DNA of 64,000 nt from Antechinus flavipes. Taxonomy: Eukaryota. The notes beneath the pieces are model-generated. The model was not told the DNA's origin. It made no database searches and worked only from the letters and a program-made list of their open reading frames with translations. This document shows, piece by piece, positions 1-20,659 of this stretch. Numbering within the stretch: the first letter of the stretch is position 1; every line of letters starts with the position of its first letter. A program made the position numbers and the translations under genes. The DNA lies in assembly GCF_016432865.1 (NCBI RefSeq), contig NC_067403.1:254014001-254078000 (forward strand), written 5' to 3'.

Positions 1-560
1 GAGACAGTAGAGAGCCCCTGGGGTTTGAGGGGGCGAGGAGATGGAGTGATCATCCCGTGCTTTAAGAGTCTCACTCTGATGGCAGTGAGGAATGGACTTT
101 CTGGGGAGAGACTGGAGGCAGGCAACCCGCCACAGCTCCTGCCATAGTCCAGGGGTGGGGTCCTGAGGGCCTGGGCCAGGGAGGGGTCGGTGCCCGAGGA
201 GGGGAGGGGGCTTCCTCGAGAGATGCTGCAGGGGTGGAATTGTCGGGCCCACCGCCATATTGGATCTGGGAGATGAGCCATGGTGAGGAGGACTGGGAAG
301 AGAGAGATGCTCTCTATGGTCGCAGGGAAAGTAGGAGGGTGGGAAGGTTTCGGGGAGAAGGGGAATGAGCTCAGTCCTGGGCGGTTTAAGAAGTCGGGGG
401 GAGTCCAGAGTGAGGAGTACTGGAAGTGCAAGGTTGGGGGTCAGCAGAGAGGTCAAAGGTAGATTGAGAAGATAATTGAGAGGGAGCAGTGTTGCTGGAA
501 TGGTAAGGTCAGAAGCCAATGGTAGGGGGTGAGGAAGGGAAAGTGAAGGCCCCGTGGTAG
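1..560 (-). mobile_element. Degraded L2 LINE fragment
   Basis: Purine-rich text such as 'ggggagagactggaggcaggcaacccgccacagctcctgccatagtccagg' resembles the antisense strand of mammalian/marsupial L2. Boundaries approximate; recognised by eye. Confidence 0.5.
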
Positions 561-1527
561 GAAGGCCAGGTCTCATAAGGGCTAATAGATGGAAGGAGGG
601 GTAAAGGAAAAGCCTGGAGATCCAGGGAAGCTGGTTGCCCGTGGAACGGGCATCCCAGAGGGCACCGGGGATGGGCTGGGAGGAGTTGGGAGGGGGAAGG
701 CTGGGGAAAATGGGAATGAGGAATCGAGTCGGGCGGGGGATGAGGGTTGGAGGACGGCGATCAGTAACTGGGGTGTGAAGAACATGCCAGTGAGAATGCT
801 CGTTGGTGAGGAGATGGGAGGCCGCTCTTCTGAGCTCTGGCTGCTCCCCACATCCTGGGGGGGCCTGGGCGGGCAGCAGGAGGCCCTCGTGCAGGTACTT
901 TGGGGCCGGCGTTCCTCGGGGAGCGTGCTGGGCCCCTGCTGGGGAGAGATAGGACTCGGGGCAGCAGGGCGCCCTGGAGAAGCCGTGGGGGCAGTGGCCA
1001 GGACCCTAATCTCCACTTCTGCCCCGACACTGGCCGTGATGGCCCAATGACGTGGTGGTGGAAGGGCTGCTGAGATGCTCCTTGGAGGAAGGTTCTCCAG
1101 TTAGATGAAATCACAGACCCCGACCCTTCCTCCTCCTCTGGAAAACATTCCAGCCCTCTTGTCCGGCGCTGGGGACACTCTGTCGGATAAAACGGCCCTG
1201 ACCTCGGGGAGCACGTGTTTAAGTAAAAATCTAATTTTTTCACATTCCCACCCATGAGAGCCAGAGAAAGGTCAGGAGGCATCCCAGCCCATTGGCCGCG
1301 GCCTCTCCCCTCTGTCCTCCTCGGCCCTCTGGGCCCTGCCCGGCTCTGACTTGCAGCTCTCCAGGGCTTCCTCTCGCCGCCTTGTCGCCCTTGTCATGTG
1401 CCCTCCTGCTTGGGTTTCTCTGCTTCGGGGCCCACGAGTTTCCCAGACTTCCGAGTTGTTCCCTGGCCCCCACATTTGTGTCTGGGCTTTGTCCGTCTGT
1501 CCCCTGGGTTTCCAGCTCTTTGCCGCC

Positions 1528-4500
1528 ATGAGCGCTTTTGTACAGATTGCCCTTCTCTTCCTTGTGCGCCCTCTCTGGGGCTCGGGCCTGGGGGGCCGCA
1601 GGAGGATCTTTCCGGCTCCCAAGGGGAGCCCCTCAGTCCCGGCTGCTCCTCTGTGGCCCACAGCCCTTCCGGGGCCCCTGCGCGGGCCGGCTCCTGCTCC
1701 CTGCCCTCTTCCTGCTGCTCCTGGGATTGGCCATCGTGGGATTCTGGACGTCCGTGTTGCCGTGGCCCCCTTGGGAGGCCGAGGCCGAGCCAGCGGCCGG
1801 GGACAGCCCTGCGGACTGCAGGTGAGAAGCCCCTTGGGGAGGGGGGATTTACTTCAAAAGCCTCACTGGAGTACCTGCTAAAGGGGCCGCTTCCTGCCTC
1901 TGGGGACTCACAGACGATTGGGGGAGCGGAGGGAGCCATCCATGGGGGCTGATTTTTTAAAGTAGAACGTGATGGGAACCAGGGAAAGTTCCAGAGAAGA
2001 TGATCTAGGAGAAGGAAGGGAACAAGCATTTATTAAGCACCTGCTGTGTGGCAGGCATTGTGCCGAGCACTTTACAAATATTGCCTCACTGGATCCTTCC
2101 AACAGCCCAGAGGCAGGTGCCGGAATTATTCCCATTTTATAGCCGGGGACACTGAGGCAAAGCTTGAGTGGCCCATCACTATTGCGCCCAGCGCAGCACA
2201 AACGGGCTGGGGGCGGTTGGAGAGGAGGAGACGGGGCTCACCGAGAGGAGTCCTGCGGCTTCCGGGGATTGCCGCCGGGTGTTGCTCTGGGAGCATCCAC
2301 TGGGACGCTCCCAGGGACGCCATCGTGCCCCAGTAATTGTGGGGACCTCCCGGCCTCCTGACTTCCAGCTTAAATGCGCCTCTATTAGTCTTGGGAGGAG
2401 GGAGCATCCCGTTACCGGAGCCTCCAGGCGCCAGGAAGGGTCTGAGGCTGATTTTGAACCTGGCGCTTCCTGCTTCCAGGCTCTCTCTGTCCCCAAGTAG
2501 CGGAATGAATCCCGCCTGGGACACAAACCCTCTCCTCTGGGACCGTTTCCTCGCCCGTAAAACGAAGGGGCTGTGGTCAGGTGGCGGACGGCCCCCGGGT
2601 GCGAAGGGCTGTGGGGGGCGATGGTCCCTCCGGGCAGAGGGTGACAAGCAGCCCACTGTGGCCGTCACACGGGGGCATGAGGCCGTCGGCGGGAGAGAGG
2701 GCCAGCTGCCGGGGAAGAAGGAAGACTCGGCCAGGCAGTGCAGGGGGGAAGGCAGAGTGGGGGCGGGGAGAGGGGGAGCCTTCTCTTGTCCCCCTCCCCA
2801 TCCTGGCCCTCCCCCCGCAGCCTGGTGCTGGCTGAGAGCATCCCAGAGGGCATGAGCTTCGGGCCCGGAGGCCCCCGGCATCTCTCCACCCACCGGGCCT
2901 GGCTGCAGCTGATCCACAGAGCCCAGAGCCGAGTTGACATCGCGGCCTACAACTTCACTCTGCGGTCCAGAGCCACCGGCAGCGCCCACCCCTCGGGCTG
3001 GCAGGTGAGGAGTCGTCCGAAGAGAGCGGGGGCAGAAGGGCTGTGTCCGAGTGGGCCGGGAGGGAGGCCGGGCTGGGAGAGCGGCTCTGGAGGGCACCGC
3101 CTCCTCCTGCCAGCTCGGGCTTTGCTGCCAGCCGCCTGCCCCGGCCCTGCCCGCTCTGCTTGCCCAGCGCTCCTTCCCAGCTCGCTCTTCCCCCCTTCCG
3201 GGGTTCGGGTCCCCTCGCGCTCCCCCCTCCAGGATGCAGCCCCCCCGCCTCCTGCTCCGCGGCTGGTCCCTGCCCGTTCTCCCTCCTCCTCCCCTGGAAG
3301 ACACTCGGTTTTTTTCTGAACTCGCCCTCCCCCTGCCCACTCCTTCCCCACTGAGACCTTTCCTCTAGGCTGGCTCAGGGGAGAGCCTGGTCAGGGAGGC
3401 TTCCCGTCCTCCCCCTTAGGAGGCGAGTGTCAGACAGAGACACCGGGCACACGGTAGCCACTTAATAAATGCTTTTCCCTTCTCTTTTCTCTTGTCAAAG
3501 GTTGAAGGTCTAATAGGTGGCAGCCAGTACCAGAACTCACACCACTGACTGAAGGAAAGGAGCAAGGGGGAGAGGGGAAGGAGGGGAGGGGAAAGGGAGG
3601 GACTTTGCCTCTGCCCGACTTAACACAGTAATAGCCCCCCTCCCTGAGAGTTGTTGCGGGCACTAAATGAAGCATTTGCGCCTGGCACATAGTGGGTACT
3701 ACATAAGTTCTTGTTTCTTTTCTCCCCCCCTCCCCCTCTCCCCCTTCCTCCCTTTCTCTCCAATGCGACAGGACGGGAGTGTGGGGCTGCCCTCCCCTCC
3801 CCACCATTTTGGGCCCCTCCTTCCTGAGCACTGAGGGTGCTCCCTCTGACTCTTGCCCCCTGCCCTCAGGAGGACCAGGGGCTGCCCGCTGTCTCCATTC
3901 CTCATCGCCTTCGCCTTCTCCCCTACCAGAGCTGCCCGTCGCGCGCCCCGGTTTCTCCCTTTCCACCGCAGGCTCTGAGGGAGGCCGTGCTCCCCCTGGC
4001 AGCCCCCCTTCTCCCTGGGGCCCCCTCGCCCATGACTTGCTGTGGCATAAAACCACCAAGTGGCGGCTCCCGGGGCAGCCTGTGTGGCTCCGAGTCCGGC
4101 CTGGCCAGGAACTGCTCTGGCCCCTGCGGCGGCGGCTGCCTCGCTCTCTGAGCCGTTGCCTAAGGCCGGGGGGCGGCCGTCCCGGTGGGAGGAGGGCCCT
4201 GGGACTCTTGGAGGGGCTGCGGCCCAGCAGGCGTGAGATGAGGCCGCGCAGGAGCCCCGGCACGCTCCGGGAGGCCCGGCTCTCTGAACCCCGCTTTCTC
4301 TGTCCCGGGCCGCAGGGCCACGAGATCCTGGACCGCCTGCTGTCCCTGCCCGGCCGAGGGGTTCGGTTACACGTCGCCATGAACAGTCCCCAGCCCTCGG
4401 ACATGGACGCGGATGAGCTGGGCAGGCGCGGTGAGCCGGGGGGAGGGGCCGGCCCTGGAGAAGGGGGCAGAGAGACCGCGGGAGCTGAGCGCCCCCTCCC

Positions 4501-7500
4501 TTTGTGCAGGAGCCACGGTGACCCCAGTGCACATGGAGCAGCTGACCGGAGGCATCGTCCACTCCAAGTTCTGGGTGGTGGACGGCCGGGATGTCTACGT
4601 GGGCAGCGCCAATTTGGATTGGCGGGCTCTCACCCAGGTAGGGGGCGGCGAGAAGGGGCCAGGAGATTGGAAGGGGACAGCGAGAAGGGGAGGGGGCGGC
4701 AGCCAGTCTGGAGGCCTCGGGCACAGTGCCCCCATCTCCCATTCAGATCAAGGAGCTAGGAGCCGTCCTGTACAACTGCAGCCCTGTAGCCCGGGACCTG
4801 CTCTCCATCTTCAACATGTACCAGGCCCTGGGAGGGCCCGGGGCCATCCTGCCCACCGCCTGGCCCCCTCGCTTCTCTGCCGGCTCCAGCCTCCAGAAGC
4901 CCATCCGCCTGCACCTCGATGGTCACCCAGCTGACGTGTACCTCTCGGTGAGACCCCCCCCAGCCATACTGGGAGGCCGGTCCTGTCCTGCAGTCACTGG
5001 CGGAGGGCCCCAGGGAGCTCTGGAAACCCCTCCCGCACTTAACCCCCCGGGGCCTCCTGGGCAGGTCGTTGCCTCTGCGCAGGCCTCAGGGTTTTCATCT
5101 GCAGAAGGAGGGGTTGGACCCCAAGGCCTCAGGGTCCCCGGGGCTGAGGCAACGAAAGGGATATGGCGAGGTCGCAGCGGGGATTCCTGGTCTGAAGTAC
5201 TGGACACGAAGGGCAAAGCACACGTGGAGAAGCCGCCGGGACAAGAGGCTTTAGACCAAATGAAGCCGTAGAATAGGCCCCAGCGTGGGGGAGATGAAAC
5301 GGGTTTGGGAGAGCACAAAAGGGGCCGGGAAGGGGGTTTTAACAGTTAACAAGGGAGAGGCGAGTCCCTTCGTGGCGCTCCCACCGTAGCCATTAAGGGA
5401 ATGGGCCACGAGGCAGGCTCTGATTGGCTGCATCCATAGAGGAGCTTAATCCCCTCCCCAAAAGTTACCCATAACAAGGAGAGACTCAGGCAGAGCAGCA
5501 CGATGGGCGAACCCACCAGGGAGTCTGCTGAGACGGTGAGGCCGGGGGCAGACCCATAGGCCCAAAATGGGCGTCGGACACAGGCAGGCGGGCTTCCCGG
5601 GGTGGGCCTGCGGCTGAGCTGACCCCACCCGGGCCCTGCCTCTTGCCTCAGGAAGTGGGGTCAGCACAGCAGGATCCCCTCAGGCAGTCGTCCCCCCTTC
5701 CTCCATCCGGCCCCGCCCCTTCTCATGCTCCTTCCCTCTTGCCAACATCTGTGGGTTCTCAGGGGCCTCAGTCATTCCCATTTCTGCCAGAGGAAGGAGC
5801 AAAAGGCCTCTGAGAGGGGCGGAGAGGCAGGGGAGGAGGGGGAGCACCCAGGCGGCTGGAACAGCCAGAACAAATGCCTGGAGGCTGGACTTTGAGTCTC
5901 CTGCAGCTTGGCCCCTGGGCTGGAGCACAGAGTTGTGGGGGATCCCCCGCTAATCAGCCTGAGCAGGGACCAGCAGAGCAGCCAGCTTCTCCCCCAGACA
6001 GCCATGGGGGACCAGCAGTGAGCGAGTGGTCAGTGTGGCAGCCGTAGGGAGGGAGGGATGGAGAGGGGAGAGCTGGGAGAATAGTTAGGAGGGCGATGGG
6101 GACCAGGGCTACCTTGGGCCAGCCAGCGGTGGAGCGGGGAAGAATTAGCAACAGCCTCCAGAGAACCTTCAGGGTTTACAAAACACTTCTATAACAGGCC
6201 CTCAGAACAAGCCTGTGGGGCAGGCAATTTTACAGATGGGGAAACTGAAGCTGGGAGGGTCAATGACTTATCCAGGATCACACAGCTAACAAGTGTCCCA
6301 GGCAGAATGTGACAAGCCAGTGTGGGCAGGGCATTGGCCAGCCGGGGTCGTTGGGCATCACCAGGAGCCTCTGCCCCAAGCCCTTCCTCCGCCTCGGCCC
6401 TTCCTCAGCCTCGGCCCGGGCCCTGCCTCCGCCTCAGCCCGGGCTCTGCCTCCGCCTCGGCCTGCAGCTTCAGGGGGAAAGTGGGAAGCGGGGTGGCTGC
6501 CCTTGTCCAAGGTTGGGGGCTGGAAAGGGATCAGCAGGGAGAGGTCCCGGCAAGGATCCCTGGAGGGGTGAGGCCGGGGAAGGGAGCCAGAGAACCCAGG
6601 TAGGAGGGGCTGGGGGCCCCTGGCAGGGCAAAGGGGAAGATGGGAGTTTTGCCTGTGGACCATCTGGCATGTCTGAGGGAGAGCAGTATATATGGGAATC
6701 CTTTACTATGAGGGCAAGCATGGGGGGGGGGGCAGGGAATGACCCGGGGGCTGGTGACAAACAGTTTGCAGGCACCTGAGGCTGGTCCCTCACGGAGGAG
6801 GTGTCCCTGAGTGAAGGCGAAGCCAGAGCATGCTGGCTCCTAGTGCCGCCTCCCTTGCCCTTGCTTTCTCTTCTCCCCAGTCCTTTCGGCATCCCCTGAG
6901 CTCACGGGCTGTACCCAACCTTTGTGGCTACAGAGCTCCCCGCCAGCCCTGTGTGCCCCCGGCCGCACGTCGGACCTCCAGGCCATCCTCAGCACCCTAA
7001 GCCAGGCTCGCAAGTTCGTCAAGGTCTCCGTCATGGATCTGATGCCTCAGTGCATGTTCTGCCAGCCCAAGAGGTGAGGAGACCCGGCCTGGAGCCGCCC
7101 TTTTCACATGGGCCTCCCTGGCCTGAGATCTTAGTCCGTCCTGAGCCCGCTGCTCCCGCAGCTGCTGGGGCCTCTGCCCTGTCATTGCTCCTCTGCCACC
7201 CCCAGAAAGCACGCCTCTGTGCTTTGTCCTTGGACCGGTGGGGTCTGGGAACTCCCGGTCTCGAGGCTTCTCCTGAGACCTGCAGCGACGACCCCGTGTC
7301 CCTCCCAGATTCTGGCCGGAGCTGGACTCGGCCCTGCGGGCCGCGGCCTGTGACCGGCGGCTTCCTATCCAGCTGCTGATCAGCTGCTGGCGTCACTCGG
7401 ATCCTAATATGTTCATCTTCCTGGAGGCCCTGAGCATCCTGGCCCAGCCGCCTCTGTCCTGCCCTCTCCACGTGGTGAGTTTCCTTTGCAGAAGCGCTTT

Positions 7501-9455
7501 GCGGACTTGTCAGCCCCCCAAACTCCGGGAGGAAGGGGCCCACTTGGCCAGTAAGTGAGTTTCAAGGCCGGGCAGTCCCATAAAAGCCTTTAAGTGCCCA
7601 CTGTGTCCCAGCTGGGAAGCTCCGGGGCTCCGCAGTGGGCAAAGGGCCAGGCCTGGAGTCGGGAAGACTCTCCTTCAGAATTCAAATGCAGCCTCAGACA
7701 CTTCCTGGCTGTGTGACCCTGGGCGAGTCCCTTCACCCTGTTTGTCTTAGTTTCCCCATCTGTCAAATGAGCTGGAAAAGGAAAGGGCAGAATCTCTGCC
7801 AAGGAAACCCCACAGGGGGTCACAGGGAGAGTTGGGCCAGACTGAAAACAACTGAAGAAAAAAAAAAGCACTGGGGATGCAAAAGGAGGCAAAGGCAGCC
7901 CCTGCCTCGGGGAGGTTCAGTGGGACTGGGGAAGAGAACCGGTGAAAGGCGACTGAGGCACAGAGCGGGAGTAAACCCTCTGACTGCACAGCAGTCCAGC
8001 CAAAGGAATTCCTGCGTTGTCCATGGACGGGCAGGTCTCCTTCTGCATGTTCGGTCCATAGTCTCCTTCATCTTTAGACTTTTGGTTTATCTCAGCACTG
8101 CTCACAGCTCTAAAGCTACTCCAAGTTTCAACCAGCATCTATTAAGTACCTACTATTTGTGGCATAGGAACCCAGAACATAAATCTCTGGGAGAGGGGCC
8201 TGGGTTTTTGGGGGGGGGCGGGGGAGCAAGAACGGGTGATGTCACCTCTCCCGGCCCCAGGGAGCCCTCGTGCTTGGTGAAGGAGCCGCTCTGATCTGAA
8301 TCGGGAACGGATTTTCACAAGGGGTGGGCCCGGCACTGAAGATCTTCCCCCCAAGATGGAAAGCTCTCGCTTGGCTCCTTCAGGCTGGTTTAATAGGGAG
8401 GGCTCAGAGGCGCTTTGGAGCTCCCTTTGTAACAACGGGGTCTCCAGAAACAGCGTCAGTTATATCGGCCGAAAACCCCGGGCTGTGTGCCTGGGCACGA
8501 TCGAGAAGCAGTGCCAGCGGGCAGCTAGTGGTGCGGGGGTTAGAGCACCAGCCCCAAAGCCAGGAGGACCCGAGCTCAAATCTGCCCTCAGAACTTACCC
8601 GTCCTAGCTGTGTGACCCTGGGCAAGTCACGTAACCCCACTGCCTAAGGGAAAAAAGAGCCAGCCCGGAGGGAGTTTCCTTTCTATTAGAGGAAAGCCAC
8701 AGAGCAAAGGCCAGGTGATTTCATGGTGGAGGCACAAGCACTGAGGGGAGGGGTGATGGAACAGCCGGTCCGGAAGCATTGATTAAGCGCTTGCTGTGTG
8801 CCAGACTTTGTGAAAGGGCTGCCGGGCCGGTGCGTGGGGGAGAGCCTGGAACACCTGACTTGAGCCCCCCGCGTCAGATGATGGTCCGTGGGTCCCCCAG
8901 AAAGCCGGGCATCCCCACACTATTCCCACTCGCCCCGCGTTCCCCCTTTCCTGCAGAAGCTGTTTTCGGTGCCCGTGAGTGGGGACCAGTGGCAGATCCC
9001 TTATGCCCGGATGAATCACAACAAGTACATGGTCACTGACCAGGCCGCCTACATCGGTGAGTGGGGGAGGGCGCGCCCCGCGTGCCGGGATCCTCGGGGA
9101 CACTTGCCGCGCTGCGCCCTCCTGGGATCCGGCTGGAGCCAGGCAGAGCCTGGGCGCGGGAGCCCGCGGCCGGCTCAGCCAGCGCAGGTGTGGGGAGCCC
9201 TGCCGGGACCCTCCGCGGAAGCGCCTCGGCCTCAGCCCGCTCTCTTCCCCTGCAGGTACCTCCAACTGGTCCCACGATTACTTCCTCCGCACCACGGGCG
9301 TGGCGCTGGTGATCACGCGGCCCCGAGGGGCCCAGATGCTCCCGGTGCAGAGAGAGCTTGGGGCGGTCTTTGAGCGAGACTGGACCTCTCCCTACGCCCT
9401 GCCCCTGAGCCCCCACCCCCCCTGCGCTGCCCGGGGCCCAGAAGGGACCGGCTAG
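1528..9455 (+). CDS. PLD3/PLD4-like type II membrane phospholipase D-family protein (candidate lysosomal 5'-3' exonuclease), 9 exons, about 508 aa if the exon-1 frameshift is corrected
   Basis: Exons 1528(1538)-1821, 2821-3004, 4316-4430, 4510-4637, 4747-4947, 6934-7073, 7309-7474, 8957-9056, 9256-9455. All introns are GT-AG with consistent phases. Translation gives the TM segment [19 protein letters not shown], then [65 protein letters not shown] (HKD1), [74 protein letters not shown] (HKD2), [11 protein letters not shown]. These blocks are collinear with human PLD3. The ATG at 1528 (gccgccATG) is 1 nt out of frame with the TM-coding frame. Confidence 0.9.
7650..7770 (+). mobile_element. MIR/marsupial SINE fragment
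   Basis: 'ttcaaatgcagcctcagacacttcctggctgtgtgaccctgggcgagtc...agtttccccatctgtcaaatg' is the MIR core. Similar fragments occur near 6200-6300 (-), 51170-51240, 57215-57320, 61770-61860 (-) and 62265-62340 (-). Confidence 0.7.
8519..8657 (+). mobile_element. Marsupial tRNA-derived SINE (WSINE1/SINE1-like)
   Basis: gggcagctag..agagcaccagcc..aggaggacccgagctcaaat..tagctgtgtgaccctgggcaagtcac..aaccccactgcct followed by an A-rich tail. Confidence 0.8.
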
Positions 9456-9589: not shown

Positions 9590-9595
9590 AATAAA
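9590..9595 (+). terminator. Polyadenylation signal of the PLD-like gene
   Basis: AATAAA 135 nt after the TAG at 9453-9455. Confidence 0.7.
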
Positions 9596-10159: not shown

Positions 10160-13355
<3,196 letters not shown>

Positions 13356-17058: not shown

Positions 17059-17591
17059 NNNNNNNNNNNNNNNNNNNNNNNNNNNNNNNNNNNNNNNNNN
17101 NNNNNNNNNNNNNNNNNNNNNNNNNNNNNNNNNNNNNNNNNNNNNNNNNNNNNNNNNNNNNNNNNNNNNNNNNNNNNNNNNNNNNNNNNNNNNNNNNNNN
17201 NNNNNNNNNNNNNNNNNNNNNNNNNNNNNNNNNNNNNNNNNNNNNNNNNNNNNNNNNNNNNNNNNNNNNNNNNNNNNNNNNNNNNNNNNNNNNNNNNNNN
17301 NNNNNNNNNNNNNNNNNNNNNNNNNNNNNNNNNNNNNNNNNNNNNNNNNNNNNNNNNNNNNNNNNNNNNNNNNNNNNNNNNNNNNNNNNNNNNNNNNNNN
17401 NNNNNNNNNNNNNNNNNNNNNNNNNNNNNNNNNNNNNNNNNNNNNNNNNNNNNNNNNNNNNNNNNNNNNNNNNNNNNNNNNNNNNNNNNNNNNNNNNNNN
17501 NNNNNNNNNNNNNNNNNNNNNNNNNNNNNNNNNNNNNNNNNNNNNNNNNNNNNNNNNNNNNNNNNNNNNNNNNNNNNNNNNNNNNNNNNNN
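17059..17591. other. Assembly gap (533 N)
   Basis: Run of n characters. Confidence 1.
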
Positions 17592-19676: not shown

Positions 19677-20101
19677 TGTTAGGATTCTTACAAGGCTCTG
19701 AGTAAGTGGAATCGAGACAATGGCTAAATCTGGTTTAGCAGTGATTGAATCCGACAACAAATAATGGTTCCCTAGTGATAGAATGATTGGTTTGGACTCA
19801 GCGCGGGACACATAAGGAGGAGCTCTCAGGGCCAGAAGAGACAGATGCACTAGAAGCTCTCGGAGCCTCAGCCAGGATTCAGTCGAGGACATTCAGAAGC
19901 CAAAAAAGGCAGCTTAAGCTCTGGGAACCAAGGCTACAGAAGGCCGCTAAGAAAAAGGAGCTGAGCCCCAAGTGAAGGAGGCAATAAAGGATTTGGACTT
20001 TAACTCCTGGCTGCCTTGGGGGTGATTACACTGAACTGAACCGAAGGCTGCCTCCAGAAGCCCCCAAGAAACCTGCTCCCAGAGATTACATTTTAGAGAA
20101 T
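19677..20101 (+). mobile_element. Solo LTR-like element (same family as 45146-45610)
   Basis: Starts TGTTAGG. Shares a 32-nt identical block (aataaaggatttggactttaactcctggctgc) and the downstream aggctgcctccagaa..ccccaagaaacctg..ttttagaga with the 45 kb copy. Possible TSD agacct at 19671-19676 and 20102-20107. Confidence 0.6.
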
Positions 20102-20113
20102 AGACCTCATCTT

Positions 20114-20238
20114 GGGGCAGCTAGGGGGCGCAGTGGACAGAGCACCAGCCGTGAAGTCAGGAGGACCCGAGTTCAAATCGGGCCTCAGACACTTAACACT
20201 TCCTGGCTGTGTGACTCTGGGCAAGTCACTTAAAAAAA
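20114..20238 (+). mobile_element. Marsupial SINE
   Basis: ggggcagctagggggcgcagtggacagagcaccagcc..gtcaggaggacccgagttcaaat..gcaagtcactt followed by A7. Confidence 0.85.
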
Positions 20239-20659
20239 GACTTCTTTTCCGGCTCTGGGAATACGTGCCTTAGTGTCAAACTGAGAAAACATCCCATCAG
20301 TCCCATTCACGGGGGTTTGGCATAACTTGGATTTTTGATTGGAGACCTCCCCGGGGGATGGAGGGGAGGGGGCATGGGGTGTGGAGGTGGGGGTGGGGCC
20401 ACGAAGTTAAACTCATCTGCCCTGGGCGGGGGGAGGGGGGAGTCCATTCTTTAGTTTCTCGGTCCCCCGCCCCATTCAGGACCTCATCAACCCCACCTCC
20501 AAGCTGGAGCCAAGGATTTCACAATCATTGGAAGTACCCCTGCTCTCCTGTTCCCACCCCAGGGGCAGACCCTCAGCCCCCACTCCTAGACTGCCGCAGT
20601 AGTCATGCAGGCGGAGGTGTGTGGGGTGCTCCAGCCTTCAAAGAAATCTTCCTAAAACC

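Follow-up and report, generated by a model that had tools for sequence, protein, structure and literature searches.

A likely marsupial orthologue of the vertebrate paralogue PLD7 beside POLR2G in Antechinus flavipes

PLD3 and PLD4 are the subject of intensive work on Alzheimer's disease risk, lupus, the control of TLR7/9 ligands and the synthesis of the lipid bis(monoacylglycero)phosphate (BMP) in humans and mice, where they are treated as a two-member system. PLD3 is a lysosomal 5'-3' exonuclease (structures 8Q1K, 8V05 and 9VBG) and PLD4 is a 5'-3' exonuclease of immune cells (8V08 and 9VBJ). Here we describe a related gene in a stretch of 64,000 nucleotides from Antechinus flavipes (NC_067403.1, positions 254,014,001 to 254,078,000, forward strand), which we call the window and in whose coordinates positions are given unless another sequence is named. 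The window likely holds coding exons 3 to 11 of a functional marsupial PLD7, a predicted type II transmembrane member of the PLDc_3 branch that would be an endolysosomal phosphodiesterase similar to PLD3 and PLD4.

A library search with one exon of the gene (4747-4947) was followed by a full-length search with the dunnart protein (P0001), from which the best 120 matches were taken. RefSeq already annotates the gene as "5'-3' exonuclease PLD3-like" in Sminthopsis (dunnart), Sarcophilus (devil), Dromiciops and Monodelphis, to which the window protein is 87.9%, 90.6%, 81.6% and 79.4% identical, respectively. Its identity to the PLD7-type proteins of turtle, tuatara, gecko, shark, caecilian, coelacanth and teleosts is 44–56%, and to PLD3 and PLD4 42–45%. 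In a maximum-likelihood tree (IQ-TREE with careful search, LG+C20+F+G4, 62 rows, 487 columns), the window protein falls in a PLD7 clade of 30 rows (ultrafast bootstrap 100, Shimodaira–Hasegawa-like approximate likelihood ratio test 99; further support values are given in this order). This clade contains the four marsupial "PLD3-like" proteins together with turtles, tuatara, squamates, caecilian, coelacanth, sharks, rays, sturgeon, gar and teleosts, several of the teleost members carrying the NCBI name "uncharacterized protein pld7"; a newt protein (P0022) and a Logan contig (L006) also join it. The marsupials form a subclade (100/100), and the branching of caecilian, then marsupials, then squamates with tuatara and turtles, the last two as sisters, is that of the species tree.

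The window protein is excluded from the PLD3 clade (24 rows, 100/100), which includes the PLD3 of bilby, possum, devil (P0412), platypus and eutherians, and from the PLD4 clade (100/100), whose rows are eutherian only, with no marsupial or non-mammalian PLD4 sampled. PLD3, PLD4 and a hagfish protein group together with the lower support of 92/82, which makes this order of the PLD3, PLD4 and PLD7 splits tentative. An earlier note on this DNA had proposed a separate family paralogue rather than a recent PLD3 duplicate, possibly orthologous to fish pld7, and had suggested a maximum-likelihood phylogeny, in which a position inside PLD3 or PLD4 would have marked a translocated gene. The joint clade with the fish proteins, outside both other clades, agrees with that proposal, and the devil has a PLD3 of its own. 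Because the tree places the window protein in the PLD7 clade and outside the PLD3 and PLD4 clades, it does not appear to be a moved copy of either, and the comparison supports the gene as the marsupial orthologue of an ancient vertebrate paralogue, PLD7, separate from both. The public names within the PLD7 clade are inconsistent (PLD3, PLD3-like, PLD4, PLD4-like and pld7), and a Polypterus "PLD3" (P0040, KAG2460154.1) also falls in it. Two bird candidates, the "PLD3-like" proteins of Coturnix and Alca, were placed in bird PLD3 and rejected as PLD7.

The order ZBTB3-PLD7-POLR2G is common to the amniote members of the PLD7 orthogroup. POLR2G begins (MFYH..., 10653-10664, + strand; open reading frames at 10653 and 10679) 1.2 kb past the PLD7 stop in the window and aligns with the devil POLR2G region, and the ZBTB3 side falls outside the window. 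The devil and dunnart loci read TTC9C, ZBTB3(-), PLD7(+), POLR2G(+), with POLR2G gene calls that carry SHS2_Rpb7-N. The turtle Emydura has ZBTB3(-), PLD7(+), POLR2G(+), EEF1G, and the gecko Heteronotia has ZBTB3(-), PLD7(+), POLR2G(+). The interval between ZBTB3 and POLR2G, to which the earlier note had drawn attention, is thus occupied by PLD7 in all four species. In the teleost Nelusetta, pld7 adjoins GPR137 and SYVN1, two genes of human 11q13. A pompano gene list gives pld7 the same neighbours, GPR137 and SYVN1 (PMC12903247). In Emydura, EEF1G directly follows POLR2G (L003:27909-30671), and in the window the gene order given by the earlier note has the TAF6L to STX5 side downstream; this suggests a rearrangement breakpoint beside POLR2G between sauropsids and mammals.

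Translation of the window in three frames, with inspection of the exon boundaries, gave nine coding exons on the + strand (1664-9455), with GT-AG introns throughout, consistent phases and mostly gtgag donors. The joined exons form an open reading frame of 463 codons that ends in TAG (9453-9455), and an AATAAA polyadenylation signal (9590-9595, + strand) lies 135 nt past the stop. The gene had been described before as complete in nine exons, with a start at 1528 and this polyadenylation signal. The nine exons, the canonical splice sites and the signal stand, but the completeness does not, as two upstream coding exons are outside the window. The start is likewise withdrawn: the ATG at 1528-1530 (+ strand), although in a Kozak-like context, is intronic and in a frame that differs from that of the transmembrane exon, hence outside the coding sequence; if the segment from this ATG to the donor at 1821 is spliced to the second exon of the window, its frame runs into a stop codon.

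The first coding exon in the window (1664-1821, + strand), which encodes the transmembrane helix, has the acceptor cccacag/CCC at 1663/1664 and the donor CAG/gtgaga. It is the third coding exon in the devil and dunnart models, whose counterparts use the same acceptor (devil, L001 14106-14245; dunnart, L002 14152-14309). The devil (P0151, 514 amino acids) and dunnart (P0001, 520 amino acids) proteins, mapped on their own loci, have 11 coding exons each. By blastn, position 1 of the window corresponds to 12690 of the devil locus L001, downstream of both the devil ATG exon (from 10001) and coding exon 2 (12114-12212). The alignment therefore places both upstream exons left of the window, at predicted distances of about 0.5 and 2.7 kb, so that the window comprises coding exons 3 to 11. 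When marsupial N-termini were compared with window positions 1-3000 by tblastn, only the transmembrane exon and the next exon were matched significantly, with one further long, stop-interrupted read-through alignment downstream; the upstream exons were not found there. A small intron that would rescue the ATG at 1528 was also considered. The in-frame options need weak donors (TTT/GTACAG or CTT/GTGCGC) and introns of 73-124 nt, and they were rejected because the upstream exons that devil and dunnart join to this acceptor lie 2-4 kb away. The intron before the transmembrane exon contains about 237 bases (1245-1482) that are absent from the aligned devil sequence (L001 13909-13934), which reflects either an insertion in Antechinus flavipes or a deletion in the devil.

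The protein encoded in the window has the catalytic motifs of the family. Both motifs reported in the earlier note, HxK(x)4D(x)6GSxN and HxK(x)4D(x)6GxSN, were recovered, together with the single transmembrane anchor and a 17-residue peptide that it had cited. The first motif lies in an 18-residue stretch of the exon at 4510-4637 (+ strand; Pfam PLDc 1.4e-10, PLDc_2 2.7e-07) and comprises H170, K172, D177, G184, S185 and N187 in core numbering. The second, a 17-residue stretch with H385, K387, D392, G398, S400 and N401, is carried across exons 8 and 9 of the window. Exon 8 (8957-9056, + strand) provides 14 residues, in which Asp takes the place of the Glu of PLD3 and PLD4, as it does in all PLD7 rows, and exon 9 (9256-9455, + strand) is the last coding exon, which opens with TSNWS. 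The active site of human PLD3 consists of H201, K203, N218, H416, K418 and N432, and D208 is structural (PMC10783504); E229 is the proposed proton acceptor (PMC12749308). The equivalents of all eight residues are kept in the window protein. Of the residues that contact single-stranded DNA, it retains E229, F335, W367, H369, Y411 and Y437; it has Asn in place of Y126 and, as in most PLD7 proteins, Asp in place of N328. The PLD7 signature PQCxFCxPxRFWP is also present, its PLD7-type segment (13 residues plus R) being found in the exon at 6934-7073 (+ strand).

The PLDc_3 region (PF13918) starts in the exon at 4747-4947 (+ strand), the fifth in the window, which is 91% identical to the dunnart protein and matches the solved PLD3 and PLD4 chains in the PDB with E-values of about 1e-12 to 1e-13. 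Exons 5 and 7 score above the cut-off for this family and exon 6 below it, and the full-length marsupial orthologues reach 1e-29 to 1e-32. The fold was examined on the devil orthologue P0151. Its AlphaFold model has a mean predicted local distance difference test score of 83.8 overall and mostly >90 in the luminal part, with a disordered segment at 1-62, a helix at 64-82 and then a confidently modelled luminal domain. Against the PLD3 and PLD4 structures, the target-normalised template modelling score is 0.91-0.94 (0.91-0.93 for PLD3 and 0.93-0.94 for PLD4), with a root-mean-square deviation of 1.6-2.0 Å over about 400-410 aligned columns, and Foldseek gave E-values of 1e-52 to 1e-59. In the window protein, a hydrophobic helix of 19 residues has a Kyte-Doolittle mean of 2.57 over that length, against 1.38 for the next highest stretch. 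A single N-terminal membrane helix before the catalytic domain is consistent with the type II layout shared with PLD3, the orientation being predicted.

The marsupial protein shares with PLD3 the His, Lys and Asn residues of the active site, E229 and most of the residues that contact single-stranded DNA, but it is a paralogue in a separate clade and at another locus, with Asp rather than Glu in the second motif, Asn at the position of Y126 and one of the five PLD3 N-glycosylation sites (the equivalent of N236). Compared with PLD4, the fold and active-site residues are likewise kept at about 45% identity, but the clade is again separate from the eutherian PLD4 sampled.

Alongside the gene structure, orthology, synteny, constraint and catalytic residues found here and the fold of the devil orthologue, we infer the location, topology, substrate and chemistry of the enzyme. 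The protein would be anchored by one membrane helix, with a short tail in the cytosol, most of it encoded upstream of the window, and a PLD fold of two lobes in the lumen, whose two HKD motifs would form a single active site. By analogy with PLD3 and PLD4, it would act in the endolysosomal lumen and cleave phosphodiesters through a covalent phosphohistidine intermediate, following the ping-pong mechanism of the family. The most likely activity would be 5'-3' exonucleolytic digestion of single-stranded nucleic acid; transphosphatidylase activity of the BMP type may also be possible. The marsupial change of Tyr to Asn in the 5'-end pocket and the shorter tail may set its substrate preference apart from those of PLD3, PLD4 and the PLD7 proteins of other lineages.

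Selective constraint was estimated by pairwise maximum likelihood among three dasyurid-type sequences (window, devil and dunnart) over the nine shared exons. For devil and dunnart, the coding sequence built from these exons reproduces the public protein models exactly, and the exon borders are identical. The ratio of nonsynonymous to synonymous substitution rates (dN/dS) is 0.21-0.25 overall and 0.15-0.21 in the luminal domain, with a bootstrap upper bound <=0.54; across the three sequences it is about 0.2, where the earlier note had named a value of about 1 as evidence against the gene. Between window and devil, exons are 91-95% identical (82% for the transmembrane exon with its flanks) and introns about 78%. 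These values point to a functional gene under purifying selection. The Antechinus genome paper lists, in a table of Alzheimer's genes, a 520-amino-acid "PLD3" (432_gene_623) with Trinity transcript support; it failed the reciprocal best hit, its best human match being PLD4, and its identity to human PLD3 is 33% (PMC9631953). From its length and behaviour, 432_gene_623 is probably PLD7 rather than PLD3, and its Trinity support is a lead for the transcription of PLD7, not proof.

Several observations weigh against a conserved PLD3/PLD4-like enzyme. The marsupial stem branch measures 0.78 substitutions per site, several times the sauropsid branches, and 12 of 120 positions otherwise conserved across PLD3, PLD4 and PLD7 are changed in marsupials, most notably that of human PLD3 Y126. 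In human PLD3, the hydroxyl of Y126 contacts the 5'-OH of the substrate in a tight pocket, and W367 and H369 bind substrate phosphates (PMC12749308). The position of Y126 is Asn in 5/5 marsupials and Tyr in 51/51 other PLD3, PLD4 and PLD7 rows; in the window it belongs to the exon that opens the luminal domain with a 10-residue segment (2821-3004, + strand), where a marsupial-specific YN(FT) stands at the position of F125/Y126 and the Asn creates an N-F-T sequon. At the W367 position the devil has Ser (ISCSRHSD, L001 about 20156-20321), in the old and new assemblies alike, and at the H369 position the dunnart has Gln (CWRQSD, L002 about 19797-19962), which hints at weaker constraint on the nucleic-acid contacts. 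The window species keeps both residues, as W336 and H338, in the exon FWPELD...CPLHV (7309-7474, + strand; Pfam PLDc_3 3.8e-07). In addition, the gene model of this species covers nine of the expected 11 coding exons, the first two lying to the left of the window. Finally, searches of the literature on PLD7, PLD3-like proteins and PLD3/4/5 phylogeny turned up no study of vertebrate PLD7 and no activity, localisation or expression data for it.

The marsupial proteins also differ from the rest of the PLD7 orthogroup in having NCSP where nearly all other rows have NCSC, and in an N-terminal cytosolic region that is much shorter: the ESIP motif follows after 85-141 residues in the marsupial models and after 223-476 in most other full-length PLD7 rows. 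The marsupial models thus lack the long cytosolic extension of PLD7 (about 180-420 residues before the membrane helix). The short tail is a lineage difference and no bar to orthology.

Because these marsupial changes occur with a dN/dS near 0.2, they suggest, as a hypothesis, that function was changed rather than lost. The alternative that survives best is that the enzyme is functional but retooled, no longer acting as a PLD3-like exonuclease on single strands with a 5'-OH and using a different substrate, for example a lipid or nucleic acid with a 5'-phosphate. The Asn shared by all marsupials, the lineage-specific replacements in devil and dunnart, the long stem combined with a dN/dS of 0.2 within marsupials and the shortened tail all favour it. 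However, the catalytic residues are kept, most cavity residues (E229, F335, Y411, Y437 and T441) are unchanged or show conservative replacements (two marsupials have Phe at Y411), and one change in the pocket need not alter specificity. We regard such retooling as possible, though clearly less probable than a PLD3/PLD4-like activity; it is a variant of our preferred explanation and does not contradict it. Since the pocket of Tyr126 normally excludes 5'-phosphorylated ends, an Asn there could widen the range of substrates. A more specific and slightly more doubtful proposal is that the Asn pocket and the short tail together make marsupial PLD7 a lysosomal phosphodiesterase able to use substrates outside the range of PLD3 and PLD4, for example nucleic acids with a 5'-phosphate or the head group of a lipid. 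If so, marsupials would have a nucleic-acid or lipid clearance activity, possibly one that controls sensing of the TLR7/9 type, without a eutherian counterpart.

It is very unlikely that the gene is a decaying or non-functional copy heading for the loss presumed in eutherians. The fast-evolving marsupial stem, the substrate-contact residues altered in single species and the position of the 5' exons outside the inspected window could be read in this way. However, the frame is open and the splice sites are perfect in the window, four other marsupials have public models with open frames as well, dN/dS stays at 0.15-0.25 with an upper bound of 0.54, exons are far better conserved than introns, and there is probable transcript support in Antechinus. 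A translocation of the true PLD3 or PLD4 orthologue to this locus can be dismissed with near certainty: the RefSeq name "PLD3-like" and the roughly equal distance from PLD3 and PLD4 would allow it, but the protein lies outside both fully supported clades (that of PLD4 sampled from eutherians), devil, bilby and possum each have their own PLD3, and the site beside POLR2G is ancestral because it is common to turtle and gecko.

Our preferred reading, a functional PLD7, bears on how the family is counted. PLD7 is found in fish, amphibians, reptiles and marsupials, and among mammals only in marsupials, as far as annotated proteins go. Most jawed vertebrate groups therefore carry a third paralogue beside PLD3 and PLD4. 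The best 120 annotated-protein matches to the dunnart protein included no PLD7 from eutherians, monotremes, frogs, birds or crocodilians, and eutherians appear among them solely as PLD4 at 45-50% identity. This supports the view that PLD7 is not annotated in eutherians, a claim about annotated proteins and not about loss at the DNA level. PLD7 genes may be GC-rich and poorly assembled, so that some lineages may simply be missing from annotations; we advise this caution because of the GC-rich contig L006 (Logan SRR18112698_168214; L006:2667-5221). The contig has 68% GC and carries a PLD7-type gene with very short introns. This gene has the transmembrane exon, the first HKD motif and the PQCxFCxPKR exon, is 70% identical to turtle PLD7 and stands among the sauropsid PLD7 proteins in the tree; the contig may derive from an archosaur that has PLD7 but lacks it in the annotations.

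The gene is already catalogued by automatic annotation yet uncharacterised, and our analysis is a clarification rather than a discovery. Its practical consequence is that analyses of marsupial "PLD3" can pick the wrong gene, as the Antechinus table of Alzheimer's genes appears to have done. Furthermore, redundancy in non-eutherian models such as zebrafish, reptiles and opossum concerns three genes, not two.

Of the nine exons, the remaining one, GHEILDRLL...ADELGRR (4316-4430, + strand), was defined by its translation and exon borders. Further downstream, the window contains a run of 533 N (17059-17591) within an AT-rich stretch (GC 0.40-0.45 at 14-18 kb).

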